A stretch of 64,000 nt of DNA, taken from positions 62,001 through 126,000 of the IMG/VR virus record IMGVR_UViG_3300035670_000008. The stretch is one strand, 5' to 3'. The notes below the pieces were generated by a model. That model ran no database searches. It was not told the DNA's origin and saw only the letters and a list, made by a program, of their open reading frames with translations. Positions 29,326-30,363 of this stretch are shown one piece after another. Every line of letters begins with the position of its first letter. The stretch's first letter is position 1. The translations under genes were made by a program, and so were the position numbers.

Positions 29326-29640
29326 CTACTCCGTAGGCTCAGACTCCGCGGCCCCTTCCAAAGGAAGTAGCTTACTAGACGCCTTAAACACAACAGCCCG
29401 CCGCCCGGGGTGTACAACTAACTCCGCCGGACGAGTAGGAGAAGCAACCCCCCGCCGCGGGGCTCTCTTTATAACCTTAAATACACCAAAAGAATATAAA
29501 CGAACAGACTCCCCAGCTTGCAAAGCCTCCACTATTTGGTTTAGGGCGGTGTCTAACACCTGCTTACAGACAGAAGGCGCTACGCCAACCTCGGCGGCTA
29601 CCGAATCAACCAAAAGCTTACGATTTAGCATATATACCAA
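29326..29640 (-). CDS. hup: HU/IHF family DNA-binding protein
   Basis: L..GESV.L..FG.F....RAPR.G..P....FK. Confidence 0.9.
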   Translation of the reverse strand: MVYMLNRKLLVDSVAAEVGVAPSVCKQVLDTALNQIVEALQAGESVRLYSFGVFKVIKRAPRRGVASPTRPAELVVHPGRRAVVFKASSKLLPLEGAAESEPTE

Positions 29641-29812
29641 TGGAAAATAGAAGAACTAATAGCAGTATAGCTTAGTAGTCGGGGCTGGGGTATGGGTGGA
29701 AGGGGGCTTAAAAGGAGGCTAAAAAACATTAAAGTAGAAATGGATTAGTCCATTTCTACTTCAGTAGCGCAAAAGAGATTAAGTTTATAGGAATAACTGC
29801 TAGTTTTCGGTA

Positions 29813-29827
29813 GGTATAGGGGAAAAT
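29813..29827 (+). repeat. 15-bp direct repeat, copy 1 (GGTATAGGGGAAAAT)
   Basis: Identical to 60083-60097. Confidence 0.85.
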
Positions 29828-29923
29828 TAGTACAGCTCCGCGCATACCCCAAACCCGCTCTGTGAACCACCTTCAGCTATTATATATATAGCACACTATA
29901 CTACTCAACACAACATCATACAT

Positions 29924-30029
29924 CACACACACACACACACACACACACACACACACACACACACACACACACACACACACACACACACACACACACACAC
30001 ACACACACACACACACACACACACACACA
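29924..30029. repeat. (CA)53 perfect dinucleotide tract
   Basis: 106 bp of alternating CA. Confidence 0.97.
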
Positions 30030-30363
30030 TGCAGCTCCGAGGGGATGGAGCCTGGTGTAATTTATGCGGCTGTTAGTCCCAATTTTGTCAACAACAGCCT
30101 AACATTAGCAATAGCTTGTTGACTAGTCATTCTCAATAAATAGGTCAAAAACCACTATTTGATTAAAAAAGACGGTTTGTTATTGACATTCACTCTCAAT
30201 AAGGGCATAAAAAGTACTTATTTTAGCCAGTTGGGGGAGGAAAAGGGGGTGGTTGGGGCAGGCTTTGGGGGGTTTTGCTAAAGGTCGGTGTTTTATAGGG
30301 GTCAAAAACAGACTTTGGGTAGTAAAAAGGGGGTAACTAGCGGAGCTAGCTACCTATCCTTAT

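Follow-up and report, generated by a model that had tools for sequence, protein, structure and literature searches.

What is a perfect dinucleotide microsatellite of 106 bp doing in the genome of a phage? The element in question, a (CA)53 tract, lies in a 64,000-nt stretch of DNA (the window) that corresponds to bases 62,001-126,000 of the 216,563-bp IMG/VR virus record IMGVR_UViG_3300035670_000008, which represents an uncultured jumbo phage (48.9% guanine plus cytosine (GC); record classed as linear and estimated to be 96% complete). An initial annotation of this DNA had proposed that the tract marks either a replication origin or a genome terminus. We find that the tract is a genuine microsatellite in a conserved non-coding region of ~0.6-0.7 kb, and that its position points to a terminal-repeat (packaging) boundary more than to a replication origin, since it lies at the left edge of a 30-kb block present at twice the sequencing depth. 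The terminus half of the proposal thus gained support, from a doubling of depth over ~30 kb in four libraries with no new junction, while the origin half did not hold. Positions are those of the window unless given as genome positions; the tract, at ~92 kb of the whole record, and its immediate surroundings are placed as follows.

29924-30029, CA on the plus strand and TG on the minus strand, which is the gene-sense strand: perfect (CA)53, 106 bp (Tandem Repeats Finder, TRF: period 2, 53.0 copies, 100% matches)
29886-29923, TG-rich on the minus strand: degenerate C/A-rich lead-in with a single G
29632/29641-30363: conserved long non-coding region between a membrane-protein gene and a gene for an HU-like protein, from the list of open reading frames (ORFs) and the gene calls of the Joint Genome Institute (JGI)

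Depth was compared on the two sides of the tract as contig means (k-mer depth in Logan, coverage in SPAdes), which are not per-base profiles. Libraries X1-X4 comprise three subsurface runs and one soil run from a single study. The Logan contig entering the tract from the left had a depth of 61.1 in library X1 (an 85-kb contig), 217.2 in X2, 28.9 in X3 and 17-21.7 in X4, and the contig leaving it rightwards had a depth of 124.6 in X1, 378.6 in X2 and 38.8 in X4, which corresponds to right/left ratios of 2.04, 1.74 and 1.8-2.3, respectively. SPAdes contigs from ENA, placed by BLAST, gave the same picture on both sides of the block and far from it.

26248-29703: NODE_3800, coverage 15.65
30277-59842: NODE_239, coverage 33.81
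60839-64003: NODE_4256, coverage 15.55
genome ~215 kb: NODE_8524, coverage 16.81
30004-59842: double-depth block of ~30 kb defined by depth, left edge within 29703-30277 and right edge within 59842-60839

The doubling was therefore seen in four libraries of very different depth (three Logan, one SPAdes). The left edge of the block falls in the gap that holds the CA tract, and the right edge in a gap between divergent genes near 60 kb. No new junction was found at the block edges in the available contigs, although a branch at the left edge could hide in the k=31 repeat tangle: a 52-kb Logan contig runs through 60083, and three assemblies pass both edges. Each edge interval also carries one copy of an exact 15-mer, GGTATAGGGGAAAAT, which occurs exactly twice in 216 kb; it is one of 10 such pairs with both copies intergenic (rough p ~0.02), and contigs are unbranched through both copies.

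29813-29827, plus strand: left copy of GGTATAGGGGAAAAT, intergenic
60083-60097, plus strand: right copy of GGTATAGGGGAAAAT, intergenic, 30,270 nt from the left copy

A direct terminal repeat is expected to show up as doubled depth between fixed ends, with no new junction (PMC5557969), and long terminal repeats are known in jumbo phages, e.g. 66 kb in XacN1 (PMC5852040). We therefore favour such a repeat here, and tentatively read the tract as a slippage-grown sub-terminal array beside the boundary of a ~30-kb terminal repeat, situated in the conserved control region of an operon of the HU-like and PIN-PhoH genes. Replication slippage in an ancestral TG-rich stretch would have produced the (TG)53 array. 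The block of double depth would be the direct terminal repeat of a linear packaged genome of roughly 250-260 kb, and the gap would be both the junction of the unique right end (the HU side) with the terminal repeat and the physical left end. The array would then be a fast-evolving, sub-terminal tandem repeat within ~300 bp of a terminase cut or of a nick-primed duplication site, the 15-mer shared by the two edges being a candidate for the recognition site. A function of the array, if there is one, would probably not depend on its sequence: the array could be a Z-DNA-prone, supercoil-absorbing spacer between terminator and promoters or simply a tolerated by-product of slippage.

Several points weigh against the terminal repeat, beyond the use of contig means. 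The right end of NODE_239 at 59842 assumes collinearity, its far 15 kb being unseen, and falls 241 nt short of the right 15-mer, a distance that is unaccounted for. A branch node at 33118-33147 inside the block (X1 and X2) points to population heterogeneity, and the deviant composition of the block would also fit a separate element. The record is linear with reproducible ends that cut an ORF, and for this reason something else also breaks the assembly. All three arrays known at this place, here and in two relatives, lie in the largest gap and may do no more than mark where repeats are tolerated. Finally, the best cultured match of the terminase is the Microcystis phage Ma-LMM01 group (32% identity), which packages circularly permuted, terminally redundant DNA (PMC4103541); headful packaging of this kind predicts no fixed ends, a prediction that carries low weight at 32% identity.

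The tract itself was much as first described. The initial annotation had reported a perfect CA tract growing out of a nearly G-free lead-in within a gene-free region, a combination said to be very unusual for a phage, and the TRF result, the single G in 38 nt of lead-in, the gene calls and the IMG/VR scan bear this out. All ORFs in the gap encode 40-51 aa, one of them being the poly(Cys-Val) reading of the CA repeat, and the JGI gene caller placed no gene within the gap and hence none across the tract. With the spurious poly(Cys-Val) ORF discounted, this gap of 723 bp is the longest non-coding gap in the genome, and (CA)53 is the only dinucleotide repeat of at least 6 units in 216,563 bp. Phage genomes very rarely contain long perfect dinucleotide microsatellites: (CA) stretches of at least 20 units number at least a little over 100 in IMG/VR, many of them in giant or eukaryotic viruses or at contig ends, and among the matches listed none of the 117 other loci showed kinship to the present phage. 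Covariance models of Rfam detected no RNA family in the gap (best match there, E = 2.5), the sole match at gathering score being a tRNA elsewhere. Searching 50,697 phage records by blastn gave no match, and an IMG/VR search gave only distant PhoH relatives lacking synteny or repeats. Exact patterns taken from the flanks had no match in viral or metagenome contigs, near-identical records being withheld there. The 8-mer CAGCTCCG that flanks the tract was considered as a target-site duplication and discarded, as it has 21 genomic copies and terminal inverted repeats are lacking.

Relatives were found via the 391-aa membrane protein encoded to the right of the gap (38-43% identity), and a profile search for further relatives added none. 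Contigs of the relatives include JGI 3300043442 Ga0451685_0000002 and JACCDR010117045.1. Two of them, L162 and L165 (42-43% identity), share with the present phage the order membrane protein, long gap (614 and 574 nt, respectively), HU-like protein, PIN-PhoH protein, glycosyltransferase and DUF3102. This conserved order speaks decisively against a chimeric join; judged from synteny, the join is not chimeric. The assemblies agree. The left flank continues ~35 nt into the repeat in the k=31 Logan contigs of X1-X3 and the right flank does so in contigs of X1, X2 and SRR11566349, with X1-X3 contigs unbroken through 29813-29949, and three assembly blocks hold contigs of >200 kb with genes from both sides of the tract. 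As k=31 contigs necessarily end inside the tract, its length rests on the record.

The gap and the gene order are thus kept in the relatives, and the (CA)53 tract is not: at the same spot they have ~90-115 bp of other DNA, repeated or of low complexity and unrelated in sequence. L162 has a perfect array of an 11-nt unit, CTTTCATAATT x8.0, and the Logan contigs of this relative end 30 nt into it. L165 has a T/G-rich low-complexity stretch that directly follows a shared AACAGCCGC motif, contains GTGTGCGTGTATGTGTGTGG and ends in an imperfect (TG)n of ~10 units; the TG-rich lead-in of the present phage resembles this stretch. From the 11-mer array and the TG-rich stretch at the same spot we infer that (TG)53 is a lineage-specific slippage expansion of an ancestral TG-rich segment at a repeat-prone site. 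Enzymatic addition of poly(AC), which had been raised as a speculative alternative, is not supported: the tract is internal with unique sequence on both sides in several assemblies, and in L165 the homologous position holds a short (TG)n that is templated.

Could the tract act in gene regulation only? The gap has the features of a control region. On the gene-sense strand it begins with a terminator, TTTTGACCCCTATAAAACAC, a C-rich run, two palindromes, and CTAACAGCCGC with an A/T-rich hexamer. Then come the array, the sigma-70-like promoter, a structured leader that includes a hairpin with T-run, and a second C-rich run, and after these the HU-like, PIN-PhoH and glycosyltransferase genes on the minus strand.

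30364-31539, minus strand: gene for the 391-aa multi-pass membrane-like protein, first gene of the double-depth block, no Pfam or PHROG match
30332-30354, minus strand: terminator-like hairpin with T-run after the membrane-protein gene, with tail motif CCCCCTTTTTACTAC (fold and motif)
30288-30307, minus strand: conserved motif TTTTGACCCCTATAAAACAC, present in two tandem copies in L162
30233-30272, plus strand: G-run cluster, G-quadruplex-type motif; X4 and ENA contigs begin at 30277
30180-30202 and 30116-39: two operator-like palindromes TTATTG-N9-11-CAAYAA, in a segment (30116-30202) of 30-38% GC
30057-30076, minus strand: conserved promoter-like motif CTAACAGCCGC, then ATAAAT, ~20 nt upstream of the tract and directed into (TG)53
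29879-29908, minus strand: sigma-70-like promoter TTGAGT-18-TATAAT, a consensus match only (10/12 positions)
29680-29857: structured leader with 21-nt complementary arms (29680-29700 and 29837-29857) around a 15-bp hairpin
29730-29763, minus strand: the 15-bp hairpin, with T-run, inside the leader arms (fold)
29681-29706, plus strand: left G-quadruplex-type motif; low-coverage assemblies stop at 29703
29326-29631, minus strand: gene for the HU/IHF-like DNA-binding protein, 101 aa from ATG, strongest outlier of the genome in GC skew at third codon positions (GC3 skew)
27911-29269, minus strand: PIN-PhoH gene

Part of this layout is shared. The tail motif CCCCCTTTTTACTAC has 4 genomic copies and stands at the same place in L162, L165 and L169, and so is kept in all four phages; the terminator tail motif CCCC(C/T)TTTTTACTAC after the membrane-protein gene is kept in all relatives. 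In the genome this tail follows four minus-strand genes (30319, 34104, 38552 and 39485), all within the double-depth block. The palindromes have no other sites in the genome, and one of them is conserved in L162. The fold of the leader is stable on either strand (z ~ -3.8), and the corresponding position in L165 has a hairpin that resembles a terminator. Of the 10 genomic copies of CTAACAGCCGC, 6 are intergenic; the motif recurs in the gap of L162, L165 and L169, and lies 27-68 nt upstream of the glycosyltransferase start in the present phage, L162 and L165. Its sites include a four-copy cluster at 55382-55468 as well as 27891, 30066, L162 9756 and L165 9846. It is probably a phage-specific promoter or operator, perhaps served by the phage's own sigma factor (22900-23907). 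A further candidate, GTGCTATAT(A/T)AATA as a general promoter motif, was dropped because only four intergenic sites exist. The two G-quadruplex-type motifs, both on the plus strand and ~200 nt either side of the tract, are the only intergenic ones in the genome, and the low-coverage assemblies (Logan X4 and ENA) break exactly at them (29703 and 30277).

On the regulatory account, the tract would be a microsatellite and nothing else, a hypermutable, Z-DNA-prone element upstream of the promoter of the HU-like and PIN-PhoH genes, with the depth block unrelated; in a variant, the tract would lie in a long 5' leader if CTAACAGCCGC is the promoter. In either case it would tune expression by absorbing supercoils or by changing in length. 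The promoter-like elements on both sides speak for it, TTGAGT beginning 15 nt downstream of the tract in a promoter that faces the HU-like gene and CTAACAGCCGC lying upstream, as do the structured leader with its terminator-like hairpin, the palindromes found only here and the HU-like gene downstream. Alternating purine-pyrimidine (CA)n is moreover a classical Z-forming sequence (PMC5622345), and the predicted Z-DNA potential of the tract follows from 106 bp of perfect alternating CA/TG. However, no sequence-specific or Z-DNA-specific role is conserved, because the relatives have unrelated sequences here (an 11-mer array and a T/G-rich stretch). The tract is neither between a -35 and a -10 hexamer nor in a reading frame, a look for RNA runs found none listed, and the account leaves the depth step unexplained. 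We regard it as possible but doubtful.

Less likely still is a doubling of the 30-kb block by another cause, be it sharing at 100% identity with a second phage or element, tandem duplication or amplification, or an excised circle, in which case the tract would simply stand at the border of a module or of a recombination event. No other 30-kb window of the genome deviates in composition as much as the block does, the 15-bp direct repeats at its edges look like the junctions of a duplication or of att type, the ENA contigs end close to both edges, and branch nodes at 33118-33147 and 34077-34106 reveal heterogeneous populations; the k=31 repeat tangle could conceal a branch at the left edge. On the other side, a ratio near 2 was kept across libraries of very different depth, contigs are unbranched through both 15-mer copies, and contigs of >200 kb run through both edges in three assemblies. 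The left junction is ancient, since it is conserved in relatives at ~40% protein identity, and hence is no recent insertion edge. No integrase was found among the block proteins scanned, and no variant HU-like cluster was found in 5.8 billion proteins, nor was a second strain detected.

Within the block, the second largest gap of the genome (32718-33385) contains a 30-nt hairpin repeat x2 (32866 and 33041), a 30-bp palindromic tandem repeat x2 (33202-33260) and an AT-rich palindrome (33319-33357). Beside it, a low-GC, plus-strand gene of 215 aa makes up a separate 989-nt unitig (33118-34106) with k=31 branch nodes at its ends in several runs, and this points to a polymorphic cassette inside the block. 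A supposed 206-aa allele of this gene proved to be another start-codon call on identical DNA. The block also holds one of three giant ORFs of the genome, of 4,239 aa (41066-53785), with AAA/PIF1-like helicase and AAA_33 domains; the other two encode 5,112 aa (genome 126233-141571) and 6,943 aa (genome 178373-199204). A perfect (AGA)21 at 56007-56069, the second long perfect simple repeat of the genome, encodes 21 serines near the N-terminus of a 147-aa protein (ORF 55656-56099, minus strand).

A stronger version of the packaging-boundary idea holds that the array itself is the working signal at the inner boundary of the terminal repeat and acts through its structure, stalling synthesis or the terminase or flipping to Z-DNA and thereby fixing the cut or duplication. 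We consider this improbable. The same boundary signal could span the family, in the form of (CA)53 here, the 11-mer x8 in a relative and, more generally, fast-evolving arrays of ~100 bp, an extension to which we likewise give little credence. In a more remote variant, transcription starting at the conserved motif upstream would turn the array into a (UG)53 leader, and this RNA would fold into poly(UG) quadruplexes. The telomere-like role that had also been suggested finds no counterpart in the gene content, as neither protelomerase (PF16684) nor family-B polymerase (PF00136) has a match in the 96%-complete record.

Next, we consider a replication origin at the GC-skew switch, in which the tract would serve for unwinding or priming; we judge it very unlikely. 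The switch that had been noticed by eye is real: plus-strand GC skew is -0.18 to -0.25 at 28.5-29.5 kb and +0.06 to +0.14 at 30.0-32.2 kb. When windows to the left and right were compared along the whole genome, the flip at the tract was the largest at window sizes of 1, 1.5 and 2 kb, also with the tract masked, and ranked in the top 3-5 at 5-10 kb. The shared strand of the flanking genes had been taken to mean that the flip is not a coding effect, and this reasoning fails. Over 161 genes, GC3 skew on the sense strand has a mean of -0.13 (sd 0.15), i.e. third positions are normally C-rich; the HU-like gene, at +0.53, is the most extreme (G3-rich) of the 161, PIN-PhoH ranks 8th, and the genes to the right of the tract are more C3-rich than average. 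Carried by the third codon positions of the HU-like and PIN-PhoH genes on the left and of C3-rich genes to the right of the tract, the flip is a codon-level property of particular genes that share a strand, and not a mark of replication. A recent host origin of the HU-like gene was considered as the reason for its odd composition and was not supported, the protein being without word-sharing relatives.

Most other expectations for an origin were not borne out either. In the cumulative skew plot the tract shows a local inflection, namely a minimum, whereas the global minimum and maximum are at genome 171,225 and 64,587, respectively; skew tracks individual genes across the genome and shows no two-armed pattern. 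The repeats at genome 171.3-172.0 kb, at the global minimum, had looked like iterons and are collagen-like coding repeats of a tail-fibre gene, and for this reason skew gives no usable origin call in this genome. DnaA-box-like sites were absent from the gap and from the 2 kb around the tract, their total in the window being at chance level. Primase, helicases and a split family-A polymerase are encoded at genome 28-31, 53-55 and 59-63 kb (replication genes 19-34 and 53-63 kb), 30-60 kb from the tract. In favour of an origin, the tract lies at the sharpest local skew flip of the genome and in its largest gap, which offers the 30-38% GC segment, the two palindromes and direct repeats, and which the HU-like gene adjoins. 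The motifs of the family-A polymerase are distributed over two minus-strand ORFs (genome 59545-60258 and 62184-62426, the latter being window 184-426) with plus-strand genes between them, so that this could be a split or interrupted gene.

Weakest of all is an assembly artefact, whether a chimeric join or a repeat collapsed to an arbitrary length, which draws on the necessary stop of k=31 contigs in the tract and on several other IMG/VR (CA) tracts that cluster near 100-108 nt and suggest a limit on assemblable length set by short reads, and which is hardly credible given the gene order conserved in two independent relatives, both junctions in several runs, three assemblies with >200-kb contigs across the tract, and 106 bp that should fit within a typical 150-nt read.

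How does the locus compare with known systems? In T7 and its relatives, as Dunn and Studier reportedly described in 1983, arrays of short repeats (SRL and SRR) flank the terminal repetition. The T7 arrays consist of imperfect ~7-bp units beside a 160-bp repeat in a 40-kb podovirus. The likeness lies in short-unit, non-coding tandem arrays beside a direct terminal repeat at the concatemer junction, the terminal repeat being inferred in the present phage, and in arrays that are poorly conserved in sequence between relatives and unclear in role. The present phage differs in having a perfect dinucleotide x53, a candidate repeat of 30 kb and a myovirus-like genome of ~220 kb; in addition, no array was found at the right edge by TRF. 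For phage P1, the pac site has clustered short repeats around the cut, and cleavage needs IHF or HU. Clustered short repeats and palindromes at a candidate packaging boundary, with an HU/IHF-like gene adjoining, recall this arrangement, although there is no homology and the P1 hexamers carry GATC, which this genome avoids. GATC is ~seven-fold under-represented (119 sites vs 843 expected; CGATCG 16 vs 50), which suggests pressure from a GATC-specific host restriction system; HIP1 showed no enrichment in the genome.

With T5, SPO1, XacN1 (66 kb; PMC5852040) and the PhageTerm signature (PMC5557969) the locus shares a block of tens of kb at twofold depth with sharp edges and no new junction, although the termini here are deduced from contig depths and the nearest cultured terminase relatives are headful packagers. 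Phase-variable simple repeats of bacteria (e.g. PMC6321876) are similar in that a perfect, slippage-prone repeat lies beside a promoter-like element; those repeats, however, are placed between -35 and -10 or in reading frames and have up to ~20 units, whereas this tract is outside the hexamers, far longer and in a phage. Finally, Z-DNA-forming (CA/TG)n 'flipons' (PMC5622345, PMC10474125) resemble it as long alternating tracts upstream of a promoter that flip under negative supercoiling. They are described mainly in eukaryotes and engineered plasmids, and the relatives of this phage keep no Z-prone sequence here.

Elsewhere the genome encodes ribonucleotide reductase, primase, helicases, the split family-A polymerase, portal, tail sheath, terminase, collagen-like tail fibres and the sigma factor. 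The end of the record (genome 214301-216563) cuts an ORF, and a 1.7-kb contig from a different JGI assembly has the same end to the base. The ENA strain, identical elsewhere, differs by 1.2% in this part, which suggests a variable region that breaks assemblies. A 138.5-kb 'longest record' was rejected as closing the genome circle, since the gene near the record end is missing from all contigs of 50-200 kb, and an apparent 16-nt indel in PIN-PhoH of the ENA contig proved to be a run of Ns filling a scaffold gap.

For skew-based origin calls in phages these data are a caution, as the sharpest flip in this genome reflects the codon composition of two genes. If the edge of the block is a packaging terminus, the physical ends and the true size of an uncultured jumbo phage would have been obtained from metagenomes alone, and GGTATAGGGGAAAAT would be a candidate 15-bp recognition site of its terminase. 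The locus would then also provide a natural case on whether sub-terminal repeat arrays, which in T7 have been unexplained for forty years, are signals or scars.

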